Assembly: GCA_904063045.1 (NCBI GenBank)
Contig: CAJFCJ010000019.1
Coordinates: forward strand, 2,495,700 to 2,559,699
Direction of reading: 5' to 3'
Origin: Dimorphilus gyrociliatus
Taxonomy: Eukaryota > Animalia > Annelida
Length of the DNA stretch: 64,000 bases
This document shows positions 2,902 through 64,000 of this stretch, in pieces. Both the position numbers and the translations under genes were made by a program. The notes under the pieces were generated by a model, which was given only the letters and a program-made list of their open reading frames with translations, was not told where the DNA came from and ran no database searches. Each line of letters opens with the position of its first letter. Positions within the stretch are counted from its first letter, which is position 1.

Positions 2902-3044
2902 TTCTCATGTATTTTATTATAAACTACAGATGGCTTTACTAATCAACAGGAAGTAAACGCCTCCTATCTGCAAATTCTTCTAAGTAGGCACCTGTATTTC
3001 AATATTGTAGAGAGTAAAAACGCAATAACGAAGCTATTATGTAT

Positions 3045-3140
3045 CCCGCGATAGCTCAGTTGGTAGAGCGGAGGACTGTAGTAGTTCAAACAAGGATCAT
3101 AGCAATCCTTAGGTCGATGGTTCGAATCCGTCTCGCGGGA
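3045..3140 (+). tRNA. tRNA-Tyr(GTA) with 23-nt intron, copy 1
   Basis: Acceptor stem CCCGCGA/TCGCGGG, A box TAGCTCAGTTGG, anticodon GTA, intron after G37, B box GGTTCGAATCC, downstream T-run. 96 = 73 + 23 nt. Confidence 0.95.
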
Positions 3141-3254
3141 ATTTCATTTTTTTTTATTCTTTCTCTTTTTATACGTTTTTATAATAAATTAAAAAAAATT
3201 TTGAAGGTAATAAAAGATTAGCAAGAAATCTTGCTCTAAGCTCCAATTCATTAT

Positions 3255-3350
3255 CCCGCGATAGCTCAGTTGGTAGAGCGGAGGACTGTAGTAGTTCAAA
3301 CGAGGATCATAGCAATCCTTAGGTCGATGGTTCGAATCCGTCTCGCGGGA
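3255..3350 (+). tRNA. tRNA-Tyr(GTA) with intron, copy 2
   Basis: Mature sequence identical to copy 1; T-run terminator follows. Confidence 0.95.
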
Positions 3351-3682
3351 ATTTCTCTTTTTTTTTGAACAATTGCTTCGTGATAATCTTTGAAACATTT
3401 CAAAACGTTCCAATAATCGACTATACTGGTAAGGACGATTGAATTGATTATTGGATATTTCAGTATCAAGCTTGATGCTGTAAAAGCTCCGTCTTCAGCC
3501 TTTTTTCCTTCATTGGAATATAGAAAAACAACTTGGGAAAAAAAATGAGTCAAAGATAGCCTCTTATGTAAATTCTTTAAATTATTCGCCTCTACTCATG
3601 AATATTTATAAATCAATTTATTTTTAACAGAAGCCCTTAAAAAATGTCAAAAAAATTCCAGTTTTAAGCAACAATTTACCAT

Positions 3683-3778
3683 CCCGCGATAGCTCAGTTG
3701 GTAGAGCGGAGGACTGTAGTAGTTCAAACGAGGATCGTAGCAATCCTTAGGTCGATGGTTCGAATCCGTCTCGCGGGA
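3683..3778 (+). tRNA. tRNA-Tyr(GTA) with intron, copy 3
   Basis: Mature sequence identical; intron 3720-3742. Confidence 0.95.
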
Positions 3779-3865
3779 ATTTCCTTTTTTTTAAGTCTTT
3801 GCTATTGTAGGGAGAAAAAAATGGAATGGAGAAATTTTTATCATCTACACAAGCCATCATCATCT

Positions 3866-3945
3866 AGCTGCCAACTGAATTGATAAAATGGTGGATTGTA
3901 GTAGTTCGTTATGGTATGCGATTCGTTCTTAGGTCTGGTATATTT
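3866..3945 (+). pseudogene. Decayed tRNA-Tyr copy
   Basis: 3873-3907 matches the functional D-arm, anticodon and intron start at 26/35 positions; CTTAGGTC retained; B box and acceptor stem lost. Confidence 0.7.
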
Positions 3946-4089
3946 TACAGTCTCAGGGGATTGCACTGCTCAATTTCACCCCAAAAATCTTTGTCATCTC
4001 AATAGATATAAAAGATGAGGCAATTTGTCATTATCAGTCATTTATTTTGCTTCTTTCCTCTTTTAAAGCGGGGGGAAAAAAAGAGAATT

Positions 4090-4185
4090 TCCCGCGAGAC
4101 GGATTCGAACCATCGACCTAAGGATTGCTATGATCCTCGTTTGAACTACTACAGTCCTCCGCTCTACCAACTGAGCTATCGCGGG
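4090..4185 (-). tRNA. tRNA-Tyr(GTA) with intron, copy 4
   Basis: Reverse complement of the same 96-nt gene. Confidence 0.95.
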
Positions 4186-4348
4186 ATGGTAAATTGTTGC
4201 TTAAAACTGGAATTATTTTCAAACCTCTACCCGAATAGAGTTTTTTTTAAATAGTATAAAATATATATTGTGTAATCTTAAAGATTAGATTTAGCAAGCT
4301 AATTATCAAATTAGGAATAAACATCACGAACAAAAAGAAAAAAGGTTT

Positions 4349-4444
4349 TCCCGCGAGACGGATTCGAACCATCGACCTAAGGATTGCTACGATCCTTGTT
4401 TGAACTACTACAGTCCTCCGCTCTACCAACTGAGCTATCGCGGG
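4349..4444 (-). tRNA. tRNA-Tyr(GTA) with intron, copy 5
   Basis: Reverse complement of the same 96-nt gene. Confidence 0.95.
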
Positions 4445-4521
4445 ATGGTAAATTATTGCTTAAAACTGGAATTTTTTTTTAAAATAAAAAAAAAGAATAA
4501 ATTAAAAAAAAAAAATGAAAT

Positions 4522-4617
4522 TCCCGCGAGACGGATTCGAACCATCGACCTAAGGATTGCTATGATCCTTGTTTGAACTACTACAGTCCTCCGCTCTACC
4601 AACTGAGCTATCGCGGG
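4522..4617 (-). tRNA. tRNA-Tyr(GTA) with intron, copy 6
   Basis: Reverse complement of the same 96-nt gene. Confidence 0.95.
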
Positions 4618-6678
4618 ACGTTAAATTACTGCTTAAAGTACCTTAAGAATAAGCATTTAAATTTCACTCTCCAGCAATAAAAAAAAAATCGATTTTAAAG
4701 TAATGTCTTTTAATCAAAACATCCGGAAAAATTTAACATTTTCTATCAGGAAAATATTATAAATTAACTAAATAAAAGAAGTATATACTGCAAATAATCT
4801 TACCTTCATTCAATTTACCTTTGCAGCCATTATTACTTTAATATCATGAATAAATAATAACTTAATAACATTTAAATAATGAATTCATTTATAGCATATA
4901 GATATTTTGAATTATTAATAACTGTATAGTTAAAATGTAGAAATCCTTTGTTTATTCGATTATTACATGTATTGTAGGAAAGGAGAAAAAAAATTGCCTC
5001 TCTCTCTCACTCTCTCTCTTCTCATTCTTTCTCTCTTAGGTTATAAAAAGATATAATTGGAAAAAGTAATTGGAGGTTAAACAGGAAAAGATTCGCATTC
5101 TCTCTTATTAAATGATAATTAGATTTCAATTTTAATTTGCCTAGATAGAATAACTCTAAAAAGAGATCATTTATTATTCTATTTGCATTAGGTTTATCAA
5201 TTTATCATTATCTTCCTATTCAGAGTGCAATATAATATATAAAATAGATATAAGGTTTATTTAAATTATAATTTCATTCATTAACTCTTTTGTGAAGAAG
5301 ATTTATTCATAGAAAAAGAATTGGAATAAATTTATAAAGGAAATGTAAATGACCTATATTTCTTGTAGCCTCAATACATTCTATATAATTTAATTTTATA
5401 GCAATATAATAATTCAAACATAAATATTCATATTTATATTAGATTATATACAAAGAGTGTTAAAATTAGTATTTAAATGCTAATTATACTTATTTCATTA
5501 TCTTTGTCTGTTTTGTTTTTGAACGAACGTCTATTTCTCCTTTCTCATACTGGTATAAATAACTAATTTACCTGTTCTATATAACAGTATATATGTGTCG
5601 TTACGTCGAAAACGTCGAATATTTAAAATTAATACCAAATGAATAAAAAGGCTAAAAGTTAATAAGGTCTTTTTTTTTAATATATATAAAATATATGGTA
5701 ATTCTATAATGTAAAGTTGTGTTTCTTTTCTAGTGCAAGTAAACAGATATACGATTAATTCTGTAGGTATACAAATACAAATAAATCAAAAATATGAAGA
5801 GAATAATAAGCTATCAGGTTGACAAACTGTTACTATTCTTTCTATAGGATTTTAATATAAAGTTTACATTAAATTAAATTATTTAATAGAAATTCTCTCA
5901 TGTTTACATCTAAAAAGGTCTTCTTGATTTGAAAGACTAATATTATCGTCGTGAGGATGTGTGGGATTTGATAGGTAGTTTGTTTACGAAACTAGCTAAA
6001 AGCTTATCACAATTAATTTCATCATCTTCTTTTTGGTAGTGATTAACTGGATCGTAAAACTTGATTAATGAACATGTGGTATCCAACCTCTTTGTATAGA
6101 CATTGTACAGGTTTATAAGGAGATTTATTAGAGAATAATATGGCAGAAGAGGAAACAATGGATGACCTACTTAATGAATCTTTTTCTTAAAATAGCGCAT
6201 TTCTTATAATTTTTATGTATACAGAATTTTATTTTATTTCCGTTCTAATCTGCAATGAATAGGTAATTAATTTATGCAAATTAGCTTATAGTTAACACTG
6301 AATAATTTTAACACTCTTCATTTATTCCATTTCTGAAGTAGTAGCGAAATTTAAATTAGTGTTTTTAAAAGTCTTTATTTCTAATTAGAACATGACAAAG
6401 TGAAATACTGTTTCTTTCCTTACAGACGTGGAAATTGATATCCTTTTTTAGAGTCTTGGGAGGATTTCTCACAAAGAAATAATACTAAAAACAGTATAAA
6501 CAGATAAATTCATTCCGATTCTACTACGTTTTCTTTCTATAAGAGGAACGCGAAAGAAAAATGGATGATTGTTTGTATGAAAATAATTAACTCTAAATAG
6601 ACAAACTGTTCGTAATTACTGTGTAAGCAAATTTTTTCCTTTTTCAGAGTCTTATTGTTGTATTTTTTAAGTCTTTCT

Positions 6679-54718: not shown

Positions 54719-56011
54719 TTAATTAATGGCCGAAGGAGAATGTAAACTGCTGAAATCCAATAGATTTCCAACATTCAAGTTATCCAGAGCACGATCTAGT
54801 TCATCCCTATTGGATTCTTCCCATGGGTGACCAGCTTCGCTTATTGGGGACGGAGCTATAGGTGTTGATAACCCAGATTTGCCGGAAGCCTCATTTTGAG
54901 ACTCCTCCATTGAATATTTCTCCCACCACTCTGGTGGTTTTATGCCAACTCCTGATACAGTCAAATCCAAAGCCCCACCGCTGCAGAGATCAAGGGGACT
55001 GTCTTGATCGTCGGTACACAGATCTGCATCTCTTAGCAATTCCTCCAGTTCGTCTGGAGTGTCCTGATGATTTCTATTGGTGCCGTCTATAATCTGCTCA
55101 GTTTTCATTTTCATACCCCCGACATCTATGTCTTGTTCGAGGAGAGCATTCCAAGAAATATCTTCGGCTGCCAAGGTCGAATCGCTAGACGAATCGACGA
55201 TGGCATCGGGACGGAGTTCTGGCTCTTGTTTCACAACAACAACCTTTGGTTCGTTACTATTGGCTGCTTCTAATGCTGCTACAGCCCTCTCAGTTTCGGA
55301 AACTTCTTTTTTAATTCGCTTAGGTGTAGGTGTTGTTGGAGCAACAAAGTTTCCAGCATGCCTTCGCTTCTTGAACACTCCATTTACAAACATATCTGAG
55401 TATTCTGGATTTAATTTCCAAAAACCTCCCTTACCGGGTTCATCCTTTCTCCTGGCCACTTTTTGAAAACACTTATTTAAAGACAAGTTATGACGTATTG
55501 AATTTTGCCAACTGGGATCGGCCACTCGGTAATACATATAATTTTCCGTTATCCAAGAATATATACCAGATAACGTAATTTTATTCTTCTTACTGGCTTT
55601 CATCGCCATACAAATTAAAGTGGCATAGCTATATGGAGGCTTTACGTACGGATTCGTCTTATAATCGATGTTCTCTAATGAGTTGGGGGCGGAAGTTTGT
55701 CTGAGAAGCCCTACGTGATGAGGGTTGAATAACGACGCATTCATGGGTAGGACGCTATTCGGATCGACGTTCTGCGTATGAGGATCCAGCGATCCAACAG
55801 GGCTGCTGGGAGCTGATTGAACTTTTTGCGGATTAACAGCCGATGATGGTGACGTTATCGACATAATATTGAGATTTTGCAGCCAAGTTAAAGAAGTTAA
55901 ACTATCATCAAGTTGTTCGACTCCATTTGGTGGTGATGAATTCTCCCTAGCCAACCAATTCTGCCTGAGACGGAGTGCCAAATTCTCCCGTTGACTTGAC
56001 ACGATCGGCAT
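54719..56011 (-). CDS. FOXJ1: Forkhead box J1, intronless
   Basis: LDDSLTSLTWL, KPPYSYATLICMAM, YRVADPSWQNSIRHNLSLNKCF, EPGKGGFW. ATG at 56011. Confidence 0.95.
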   Translation of the reverse strand: MPIVSSQRENLALRLRQNWLARENSSPPNGVEQLDDSLTSLTWLQNLNIMSITSPSSAVNPQKVQSAPSSPVGSLDPHTQNVDPNSVLPMNASLFNPHHVGLLRQTSAPNSLENIDYKTNPYVKPPYSYATLICMAMKASKKNKITLSGIYSWITENYMYYRVADPSWQNSIRHNLSLNKCFQKVARRKDEPGKGGFWKLNPEYSDMFVNGVFKKRRHAGNFVAPTTPTPKRIKKEVSETERAVAALEAANSNEPKVVVVKQEPELRPDAIVDSSSDSTLAAEDISWNALLEQDIDVGGMKMKTEQIIDGTNRNHQDTPDELEELLRDADLCTDDQDSPLDLCSGGALDLTVSGVGIKPPEWWEKYSMEESQNEASGKSGLSTPIAPSPISEAGHPWEESNRDELDRALDNLNVGNLLDFSSLHSPSAIN

Positions 56012-61910: not shown

Positions 61911-62003
61911 AATAAATTACAATTTATACTGATCGGTTCGGAATTCAAATTAGGCGCCTTACGTTTTTCCGGAATACAGGACCGCAGAAAAATATGGTGC
62001 TGC

Positions 62004-62012
62004 TTCCTTTTC
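62004..62012 (+). promoter_or_regulatory. TCT/5'TOP pyrimidine start of RPL38
   Basis: CTTCCTTTT ahead of a non-coding first exon ending at AAG|GTAGG (about 62039). Confidence 0.6.
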
Positions 62013-62252
62013 CGGTAGCCGTGGTCGATCGCGATAAAGGTAGGCTAAATATCTTTAAATATCTTGTAATTTACAGCTAAATATGCAAAAATTTTTGTGA
62101 AAACTTTACGTATATGTTAATAAGTATGGTAATCACAAACTGGCTGGAGAAAAAATGACTTAGAATAGGGTGTTTGATGTTAATTGTATTGAAACATTCC
62201 TAGCACATTTTCTCATATATACTTTTTCATTTTCAGATCAAATAGCACCAAA

Positions 62253-62582
<330 letters not shown>

Positions 62583-62896
62583 CTGAACTTTGTTAATGTG
62601 TACATTGTGTCGAAATTTTAAGACAATAGACCCAATGATACCAGACATTTGAATCAGTCGTTCTTAATTATAATTGATTTAGTTAGGTAATTCACAGTAC
62701 TCTATGTAGGTTTTATAATCATATTTTCCGCTTGATATCGTTTGGACACATTTATAAGTAAAGTGAGTATTTTATTTATTATGGTTTTTGTATGAGATTA
62801 AAAGCTCCATTTTTTGTTCAGTCATCTCTTCTGCGCCATTGACCAAAACATTAAGGTATGTTTTTAGTTTTCATATTGTAGATAATTCTCAAATTA

Positions 62897-62990
62897 GAAA
62901 ACTGATGAATCGTAAGAATTTGACACCTCTTGTATTAATACCTTTAAAGGTATGATGTACTGAATTCGCTTACGATAACGACTGAATGTA
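62897..62990 (+). ncRNA. C/D box snoRNA, SNORD60/snR48-like, copy A
   Basis: C box 62902-62908; guide TGACACCTCTTG 62921-62932 complementary to LSU rRNA CAAGAGGUGUCA; D' ATTA; hairpin; C' TGATGTA; D box CTGA 62982-62985, 72 nt from the 3' splice site. Confidence 0.85.
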
Positions 62991-63176
62991 GGCAATATAA
63001 ATAATATCAGTTTGCAAACTTTTCAACCCTGTTCTAAGTTATCTCTTATTATTTCAGATAAAAAAATACTGACAGTTTGCTCTCCACAATTAAATAATTA
63101 ATCAATGTAAGTATTATTTTATAAATGTATTTATTTATATTCTATGCGGGCTTTGAGAATTAAAATTAGACAGACA

Positions 63177-63268
63177 ATAAAGTGATGAACTAAAGCATTT
63201 TGACACCTCTTGTATTAACGCTTATAAAGCGTGATGTACTTAAATTGCTTATTAAAATACTGAAGTAA
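63177..63268 (+). ncRNA. C/D box snoRNA, SNORD60/snR48-like, copy B
   Basis: C box GTGATGA 63182-63188; identical guide 63201-63212; D box 63260-63263, 70 nt from the 3' splice site. Confidence 0.85.
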
Positions 63269-63412
63269 AACAAAAATTATATTAAAACATTACCTTTAAT
63301 ATTTTCATCTTGTAATTACCTTTTATCTTTCAGTTACTCTTTCCAATTAAGAATAGCAAACCAACTTGCATTTATAAGGTGTGTATAAGTTTCATTTCAT
63401 TATTAGAAAGTA

Positions 63413-63497
63413 CTTGTATGATGACATTTCATAAACCTAGCTCTCTAAAGACAAGTCTGAACAACTTGTCGGTGCAGACAATTTTTAACTGATTTTA
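63413..63497 (+). ncRNA. C/D box snoRNA, snR69-like
   Basis: C box ATGATGA 63418-63424; guide TAAACCTAGCTC 63432-63443 pairs with LSU GAGCUGGGUUUA (one G-U); D' CTAA; hairpin GACAAGT/ACTTGTC; D box 63489-63492, 72 nt from the 3' splice site. Confidence 0.78.
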
Positions 63498-64000
63498 ATT
63501 TAATAGACTTTCTTAACGACAAATTTCTCTTCATTATACTAATTTTAGCTGTATTTTTTCACAGGTTTTGAGGCCATGATATGAAAACTCGAAAATTGAT
63601 CTTTATCAATGCTCGGCAATTCTTAAGTCAGAAAATGGATCAAAAAATCAGCAATCCGCTCAGTAGAACAGCAGCTATAGGTCGCGTAAAGGGTACTTTT
63701 GCGACCATCGATATTTCCAGTCCAGTAGAAAAGATTCATATTTAACTCGGCATTTATCAATAAAAACACATTACGACACAATACATCGACCTCTAAAAGT
63801 TTCCAATATAATACGTAGATGCGCTATAGAATTTGTTAACTAGCTTTTCTAAATAAAAAGCTAGTTCATTTACACAGGTGTACCATCTCAGATTAGAAAT
63901 TCCTTCACCTCTTCGTTGAAACTTTGTATTAGTATCATGTAGGAATCTTATTAAGTATGTCAGTCCAAGGACAGAGCAAATCTTTTTCTTCTCTAGAGTA

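Follow-up and report, generated by a model that had tools for sequence, protein, structure and literature searches.

A 64-kb stretch of the 78-Mb genome of the annelid Dimorphilus gyrociliatus (contig CAJFCJ010000019.1, 2,495,700-2,559,699; here called the window and numbered from its first base) probably contains, directly behind the ribosomal protein gene RPL38 (eL38), a spliced non-coding host unit for small nucleolar RNAs (snoRNAs). The unit would extend from ~62760 or 62822 to ~63785 and would carry one box C/D snoRNA in each of three introns (sno1, sno2 and sno3, in order), positioned ~50 nucleotides (nt) upstream of the predicted branch point. The evidence comes from the geometry of the motifs, from the pairing of the snoRNA guides with ribosomal RNA (rRNA), from covariation and synteny in other animals, and from the lack of relatives of the open reading frame (ORF) that the unit contains. 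An original prediction, made from the letters of this DNA, had proposed just such a non-coding, one-snoRNA-per-intron host directly behind RPL38; judged at the level of sequence, this proposal is supported by the rRNA pairing, the covariation, the splice signals and the failure to find a credible ORF.

Architecture of the putative host unit

The three introns outlined in the original prediction begin with GT and end with AG at precisely the positions given for them, and each contains the C and D boxes of a single C/D snoRNA (Table 1). In addition, all three close with a pyrimidine tract followed by CAG. Counted from the D box end to the final base of the intron, the spacing is 72, 70 and 72 nt for sno1, sno2 and sno3, respectively, as had been claimed, and this geometry is found nowhere else in the window. 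When an acceptor-like site is defined as YAG after at least 9 pyrimidines in 12 positions, only 3 of the 191 plus-strand CTGA motifs in the window have such a site 70-72 nt downstream (per-site chance ~0.008), and these are exactly the three D boxes. (Acceptor-like sites occur in the window at a density of 2.7/kb and donor-like sites at 0.8/kb.) Branch-point-like motifs lie ~50-52 nt past the D box in all three introns. For mammalian snoRNAs whose processing is coupled to splicing, the favored position is likewise ~50 nt from the branch point. The introns (186-227 nt) are about three times as long as the median D. gyrociliatus intron of 66 bp (PMC7854359), as expected if they carry a snoRNA as cargo. 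The whole unit is nevertheless very compact: it occupies ~1 kb and begins ~240 nt behind RPL38, on the same strand. From this arrangement of signals we infer that the unit is transcribed and spliced.

Within the introns, sno1, sno2 and sno3 show the features by which box C/D snoRNAs are recognized: a C box (RUGAUGA, apart from the first base in sno1) toward the 5' end and a CUGA D box toward the 3' end, with an expected separation of 60-100 nt; a guide for which at least 10 bp are expected, ending 1-2 nt ahead of D or D' and pairing its fifth nucleotide with the target; and an internal C'/D' motif. The paralogues sno1 and sno2 share an identical block of 20 nt and the same order of elements (guide, GUAUUA, hairpin and the C' motif UGAUGU); outside the boxes, the guide and C', they are not alike. 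Pattern scans of the entire genome indicate that sno1-sno3 are the only copies of the two guide types. A third genomic match to the pattern of C box plus guide was rejected as a chance match, since it sits in coding sequence, and a C/D-like candidate at 55715-55816 was judged to be chance as well, because it lies inside a long ORF. The same verdict was reached for a minus-strand C/D-like unit (62654-62722), whose C box is defective (AUGAUUA) and for which that strand offers no host. (This minus-strand unit does contain a 12-bp match, with 2 G-U pairs, to 18S rRNA 1297-1308 just before its CUGA.)

The exons of the unit are apparently non-coding. It had been claimed that the exons of 34-49 nt contain stops in all frames; when frames are judged exon by exon, this is correct for exon 2, but exons 1 and 3 have stops in one frame each. 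Because none of these three exons contains an ATG, the earlier argument that they are non-coding still stands despite this error. The terminal exon contains an ORF of 54 amino acids (aa), for which no word-sharing relative was present in the searched protein collection, not even among the annotated Dimorphilus proteins, unlike the case of RPL38, and no Pfam match was obtained. An exhaustive HMMER search returned a sole match, to a bacterial S-layer repeat protein, with a score summed over four repeats at ~34% identity; this match is regarded as spurious. The GC content of the ORF stretch is 0.36-0.44, which is above that of the surrounding introns.

Table 1. Positions (window coordinates) of the predicted snoRNAs, of the elements of their putative host unit, and of RPL38
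Feature	Position	Strand	Length	Motifs and parts	Basis or remark
sno1, box C/D snoRNA, SNORD60/snR48/SnoR1 type	62898..62990	+	~93 nt	C box CUGAUGA 62902-08; D' guide 62919-33; D' AUUA 62934-37; hairpin 62938-42 with 62949-53; C' UGAUGU 62953-58; D box 62982-85	guide pairing, conservation, sub-threshold Rfam match
sno2, paralogue of sno1	63178..63268	+	~91 nt	C box GUGAUGA 63182-88; D' guide 63198-213; D' AUUA 63214-17; hairpin 63218-21 with 63229-32; C' 63232-37; D box 63260-63	guide pairing, SNORD60 at 21.5 bits (E 0.37)
sno3, box C/D snoRNA, snR69/SnoR69Y-like	63414..63497	+	~84 nt	C box AUGAUGA 63418-24; D' guide 63432-43; D' CUAA 63445-48; hairpin 63450-56 with 63464-70; D box 63489-92	guide pairing, snR69 at 21.2 bits in the same register
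Candidate intron	62763..62821	+	59 nt	GTGAGT ... TTTTTTGTTCAG	candidate, from donor-like and acceptor-like sites only
Putative host exon 1	62822..62855	+	34 nt	CTCTTCT, like a terminal oligopyrimidine (TOP) motif, 62826-32	no ATG; stops in one frame only
Putative host intron 1	62856..63057	+	202 nt	GTATGT ... TTATTTCAG	branch-point-like CTAAG 63034-38, ~52 nt past D box
Putative host exon 2	63058..63106	+	49 nt		no ATG; stops in all three frames
Putative host intron 2	63107..63333	+	227 nt	GTAAGT ... ATCTTTCAG	branch-point-like GTAAT near 63312-16
Putative host exon 3	63334..63378	+	45 nt		no ATG; stops in one frame
Putative host intron 3	63379..63564	+	186 nt	GTGTGT ... TTTTTCACAG	branch-point motif TACTAAT 63537-43, 50 nt past D box
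Putative host terminal exon	63565..63785	+	~220 nt	AATAAA 63759-64	54-aa ORF 63581-63742
RPL38 (eL38)	62003..62600	+		exons 62003-62039 (37 nt), 62237-62255 (ATG at its end), 62316-62499 and 62557 to ~62600; TOP-like start CTTCCTTTTCC at 62003; stop codon 62580-82; ATTAAA 62574-79, then CA and GU-rich run ~62602-62612	sequence, tblastn; exon 62316-62499 100% identical to D. gyrociliatus eL38 DgyrCDS11938

Predicted rRNA targets, relatives in other animals and proposed release of the snoRNAs

Testing of the guides against the 28S rRNA of the same genome has suggested a target for each snoRNA type. The guide of sno1 and sno2 pairs with 28S 3263-3278 through 12 consecutive Watson-Crick pairs, which grow to 15 in sno1 and 16 in sno2 (2 of them G-U) when G-U pairs are allowed. 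If AUUA is taken as D', G3267 is the base that pairs with the fifth guide nucleotide (C62929 in sno1). The guide of sno3 forms 12 bp, including 1 G-U, with 28S 3421-3432 and is followed by one base and then by the D' box CUAA; its fifth nucleotide, G63440, pairs with C3424, in the same register as the snR69 consensus. The predicted targets G3267 and C3424 lie 157 nt apart. In yeast, Gm2791 (guided by snR48) and Cm2948 are also separated by 157 nt, and the spacing is the same for Arabidopsis Gm2792 (SnoR1) and Cm2949 (SnoR69Y) (PMC5389607; PMC8053127 Table 1). This equal spacing within a conserved core ties both predicted targets to known methylation sites: G3267 would be the equivalent of yeast Gm2791 and Arabidopsis Gm2792, and C3424 the equivalent of yeast Cm2948 and Arabidopsis Cm2949. 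Thus, the D' guides of sno1 and sno2 would direct 2'-O-methylation at 28S G3267, and that of sno3 would direct it at C3424.

The choice of G3267 depends on the register in which D' is read. Homologues from the mollusc Haliotis have a canonical CUGA as D' in the same register as the AUUA of Dimorphilus, which supports G3267 as the target. In the alignment obtained with a permissive Rfam scan, the SNORD60 consensus places its register on the counterpart of yeast G2793, two bases beyond. By analogy with snR48, the GUAUUA region of sno1 and sno2 might also direct modification of G3269, which lies two bases away and is the equivalent of yeast Gm2793. The D-side guides gave no significant rRNA targets, and none that sno1 and sno2 have in common; in both of these RNAs, the spacer on the D side pairs with the spacer after box C. 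Other complementarities are also present. The sequence CCUCUUGUAUUAA, which comprises the 3' part of the guide and the D' region (62926-62938 in sno1 and 63206-63218 in sno2), can pair, with 2 G-U, with 28S 3508-3520 beside the sarcin-ricin loop, and ACACCUCUUGU can pair with 28S 2852-2862. Both of these extra pairings are probably by-products of a shared AGAGG motif.

Relatives of sno1 and sno2 have been found in the RPL38 loci of other animals and by scanning metagenome contigs for a C box plus guide. In the leech Helobdella robusta, two SNORD60-type copies follow a TOP-like start (near 3700) and precede the RPL38 ATG; the annotated RPL38 gene of Haliotis rubra also contains two, located in the pair of introns ahead of the PQQISEIK-coding exon. 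On metagenome contig L072, one copy precedes RPL38 coding exon 2 and another follows the exon ending in PPG; on contig L124, two copies precede the last RPL38 exon; and contig L092 has tandem copies and no RPL38 exon. (The RPL38 exons on the metagenome contigs are most like those of the leech protein.) A linked SNORD60-type snoRNA was not found at RPL38 in the fetched DNA of Elysia, Mytilus, Branchiostoma, Saccoglossus and Tachypleus or on contigs L019 and L020, and no homologue of sno3 was found near RPL38 in other species. Since the same type of snoRNA occurs in or beside RPL38 in Helobdella, in Haliotis and on two metagenome contigs, introns of RPL38 were probably the ancestral host of the sno1/sno2 family, and sno1 and sno2 would then derive from snoRNAs that resided there in a lophotrochozoan ancestor.

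An alignment of these relatives reveals strong constraint on the family. The guide TTTGACACCTCTT is invariant in all ten aligned homologues, and the hairpin that separates D' from C' has all 5 of its base pairs formed (100%) over the ten sequences, with changes on both sides at every one of the 5. Such covariation was reached by none of 500 shuffles, and it collapses in shifted controls. By the criterion of sequence comparison, then, the members of the sno1/sno2 family are RNA genes under purifying selection.

Two other sets of snoRNAs came to light in these searches. Upstream of the Helobdella RPL38 ATG (4213-5587 of sequence L006), another box C/D snoRNA, 72 nt long, is repeated six times in tandem with a period of ~245 bp. 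The D guide of this RNA, TCACTCGCCGT, is complementary to large-subunit (LSU) rRNA 86-96, and the array, like the two SNORD60-type copies that flank it, lies downstream of the TOP-like start. In addition, metagenome contigs L038, L070, L080, L099 and L136 carry a second, distinct group with the guide TTGACACCTCTT, followed by GATTGAG and a hairpin, and with a conserved D-side element TCTACAAGAGAT; this group probably belongs to another eukaryotic lineage.

Several observations count against the identification of the Dimorphilus snoRNAs and would fit the idea that C/D-like motifs have arisen by chance in AT-rich intergenic DNA that encodes no functional RNA. The first base of the sno1 C box is C rather than a purine. 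At gathering score, Rfam, to which the original prediction had pointed as a check, finds six transfer RNAs (tRNAs) in the whole window and no snoRNA; the permissive scan does yield matches of the expected kinds, although these are far under the gathering scores (SNORD60, 21.5 bits vs 42, for sno2; snoR1, 15.5 vs 49; snR69, 21.2 vs 50, for sno3). The C/D kink-turn is normally closed by a short terminal stem, and none of sno1-sno3 has a terminal or external stem better than those of shuffled sequences. Finally, in a naive shuffle test of the rRNA complementarity of whole snoRNAs, the signal for sno1 and sno2 is modest, as it is matched by 6-7 of 300 shuffles, and that for sno3 is not unusual, so the sno3 target rests on its register, its homology to snR69 and the 157-nt spacing. 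Chance does not, however, account for a guide that is invariant and a hairpin that is fully compensated across annelid, mollusc and metagenome homologues, for targets that coincide with two known methylation sites at exactly the yeast and Arabidopsis spacing, or for a 72/70/72 geometry that is unique in the window. We consider a chance origin scarcely credible.

Another explanation accepts the snoRNAs as real and supposes that endo- and exonucleases cut them from an unspliced polycistronic precursor, so that the GT-AG signals would be coincidental. Polycistronic snoRNA clusters do exist in plants and yeast (Arabidopsis clusters: PMC8053127). Yet the sites here switch between donor-like and acceptor-like four times within 800 nt, despite their low densities in the window, the spacing from D box to acceptor is nearly identical in all three introns, the branch-point motifs are in the right places, and there are no flanking stems to serve as endonuclease sites; moreover, animal snoRNAs as a rule occur one to an intron (PMC5519232). 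An unspliced precursor is thus very unlikely.

If the snoRNAs are indeed intronic, the manner of their assembly can be proposed. Box C/D snoRNAs are assembled into ribonucleoproteins (snoRNPs) in either of two modes, one that depends on splicing and one that is assisted by a stem and independent of splicing (PMC5519232). The homologues with terminal stems of 4-6 bp, which include those of contigs L072 and L124 (GGTTCA/TGAACC), those of Haliotis and copy a of Helobdella, have their next acceptor at a variable distance, roughly 90 to >1000 nt. The Dimorphilus snoRNAs combine the lack of stems with an optimal distance to the branch point, which suggests that they are of the splicing-dependent kind; this dependence in turn argues that the host introns are real. 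Their snoRNPs would most likely be assembled on the intron in a reaction that requires splicing, the mature RNAs of ~80-93 nt would be trimmed from the excised lariat, and the short exons would be a disposable by-product.

Possible promoters of the unit

Two sources of transcription can be envisioned for the unit, and the original prediction had not chosen between them. The one that we slightly favor, and to which we give about an even chance, is the RPL38 promoter. In this case, the transcript would bypass the RPL38 poly(A) site or use alternative distal exons, and would be spliced into the acceptor at 62821; by a third route, the RPL38 donor at 62500 would be spliced straight to 62822. (Exon-wise arithmetic indicates that this last join would keep the frame open across exon 1, with a stop as soon as exon 2 begins.) The combination of a strong acceptor at 62821 and a GTGAGT donor at 62763, in a window where donor-like sites are infrequent, makes the exon at 62822-55 look internal. 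Consequently, the TOP-like CTCTTCT may sit in an internal exon rather than at a start of transcription. If the candidate intron between this donor and acceptor is real, the transcript would start further upstream, either at a start of its own or within RPL38.

The alternative is a separate non-coding host gene whose own start lies between ~62650 and 62826, a possibility that concerns only the promoter step and not the core proposal, and whose prospects we consider somewhat less than even. The start might be at the TOP-like CTCTTCT at 62826 or at the initiator-like TCAGTC at 62654, the latter with an extra exon ending at 62762; both the CTCTTCT and the TCAGT (62654-58) to which the original prediction had drawn attention are present. 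The 3' end of RPL38 is normal-looking by its sequence and speaks for such a start and against transcription from the RPL38 promoter: a textbook ATTAAA, which overlaps the last codons, a CA and a GU-rich element come right after the stop or together with it. Likewise, the genome paper reports no operons or trans-splicing and describes canonical monocistronic regulation (PMC7854359). In addition, a start at the TOP-like motif would give a short first exon (30-34 nt) that opens with an oligopyrimidine run, as TOP genes typically do, and that resembles the 37-nt first exon of RPL38; the first exons of Helobdella and Haliotis RPL38 appear to be similarly short (an estimated ~30-40 nt). Against a separate start are the strong acceptor directly before the exon, with the GTGAGT donor 59 nt upstream; the lack of detectable similarity to the promoter or 5' exon of RPL38; and the presence of this snoRNA type under the RPL38 promoter in four other sources. 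In addition, GC does not rise in a promoter-like manner over the 240 nt that separate RPL38 from the exon, unlike at the start of RPL38, a point that is weak because the start of the neighboring gene is AT-rich as well.

Taken together with the ancestral link, transcription from the RPL38 promoter leads to a broader scenario, which we offer tentatively, as possible rather than probable. SNORD60/snR48-type snoRNAs would have resided in RPL38 since before the split between annelids and molluscs; in the compacted genome of Dimorphilus, both copies would have moved from introns of the coding gene to a non-coding 3' extension of it, which the RPL38 promoter would drive when the proximal last exon and poly(A) site are skipped or read through, and methylation of two G residues, two bases apart as with snR48, would be possible. 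If this is true, a single ribosomal protein gene would give rise both to a short messenger RNA and to a long, decay-prone isoform that delivers snoRNAs.

Comparison with known systems and neighboring features

Viewed against known systems, the unit is an ordinary gene of a known kind; what is newly found is the link between the sno1/sno2 family and RPL38. Like UHG and GAS5 of mammals and Uhg of Drosophila, the unit has short exons without a conserved ORF and one C/D snoRNA per intron, ~70 nt from the acceptor; it also shares with them a terminal poly(A) signal and a predicted function that is tied to ribosome biogenesis. Unlike these genes, it is very compact and follows, at a distance of only ~240 nt, a ribosomal protein gene of the same orientation, whose promoter it may use as well. 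Furthermore, UHG and GAS5 have a 5'TOP start, whereas the TOP-like CTCTTCT of Dimorphilus is only a candidate start that is preceded by a strong acceptor.

The individual snoRNAs also have clear counterparts. As in yeast snR48, Arabidopsis SnoR1 and vertebrate SNORD60 (Rfam clan CL00066), the D' guide of sno1 and sno2 pairs with GAGGUGUC of LSU helix 88, and the predicted target corresponds to G2791 of yeast and G2792 of Arabidopsis, the targets of snR48 and SnoR1. The D' box is non-consensus, as it is in yeast snR48 (AUUA within GUAUUA in Dimorphilus, AUGUUA in yeast). In contrast to the members of CL00066, sno1 and sno2 reach only half of the Rfam gathering threshold, and their D-side spacer, being paired with the spacer that follows the C box, has no recognizable guide. 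As in yeast snR69 and Arabidopsis SnoR69Y (RF00475, CL00051), the D' guide of sno3 pairs with GAGCUGGGUUUA in LSU domain V, in the same register; its duplex is 12 bp long, vs the 8 bp reported for Arabidopsis SnoR69Y. It differs from snR69 and SnoR69Y in its Rfam score (21 bits vs a gathering score of 50), in the one G-U inside the duplex and in a D' box that reads CUAA. With the snoRNAs in the RPL38 introns of Haliotis rubra, Helobdella robusta and contigs L072 and L124, sno1 and sno2 share the family, the usual number of two copies, the strand of RPL38 and a location within a few kb of it. In those sources, however, the copies occupy 5' untranslated region (5'UTR), early or last introns of RPL38, and most have terminal stems and a variable distance to the acceptor, whereas the Dimorphilus copies lie behind the RPL38 stop and poly(A) signal, lack stems and are at the optimal distance.

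In the literature searched, there is no paper on the snoRNAs of D. gyrociliatus, a model of genome compaction. The locus adds three guide RNAs with clear, predicted rRNA targets, with covariation support for sno1 and sno2. It suggests that an annelid, too, follows the mammalian ~50-nt branch-point rule, and does so precisely for snoRNAs that are stemless. The association of RPL38 with these snoRNAs across annelids and a mollusc would provide a clean case in which the position of a snoRNA shifts from lineage to lineage while the expression context of its host is kept. Finally, the locus offers a simple test bed for the question of whether transcription of a ribosomal protein gene, by bypassing the poly(A) site, can supply a snoRNA unit that lies behind the gene.

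The surroundings of the unit leave a limited space for it, between 62583 and ~63790. The downstream neighbor is convergent, on the minus strand, with its stop codon at ~63793, an orientation that rules out a reading of the unit as 5'UTR of some plus-strand gene further downstream. The possibility that the unit is a decayed tandem copy of RPL38 is not supported either: comparison with the RPL38 locus by blastn and tblastx gave a best E of 0.087, between two AT-rich intron ends, and no relic of the last coding exon was found. Within RPL38, the 5'UTR intron at 62040-62236 is 197 nt long, which is also three times the genomic median. No snoRNA is recognizable in this intron, either in its sequence or by the permissive Rfam scan; in Helobdella and Haliotis, SNORD60-type copies occupy the corresponding region.

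Elsewhere in the window, a 9-bp inverted repeat (CTAGCTTTT ... AAAAGCTAG) is present at 63841-63866, ~55 nt past the predicted end of the host unit and ~50 nt inside the last coding exon of the minus-strand neighbor. At 3044-4618, a tRNA gene of 96-98 nt occurs in six copies, three per strand, all of which have the same Rfam score. ARAGORN reports for them a 4-base anticodon loop, 'gtag'; they are probably intron-containing tRNA-Tyr(GTA) genes.

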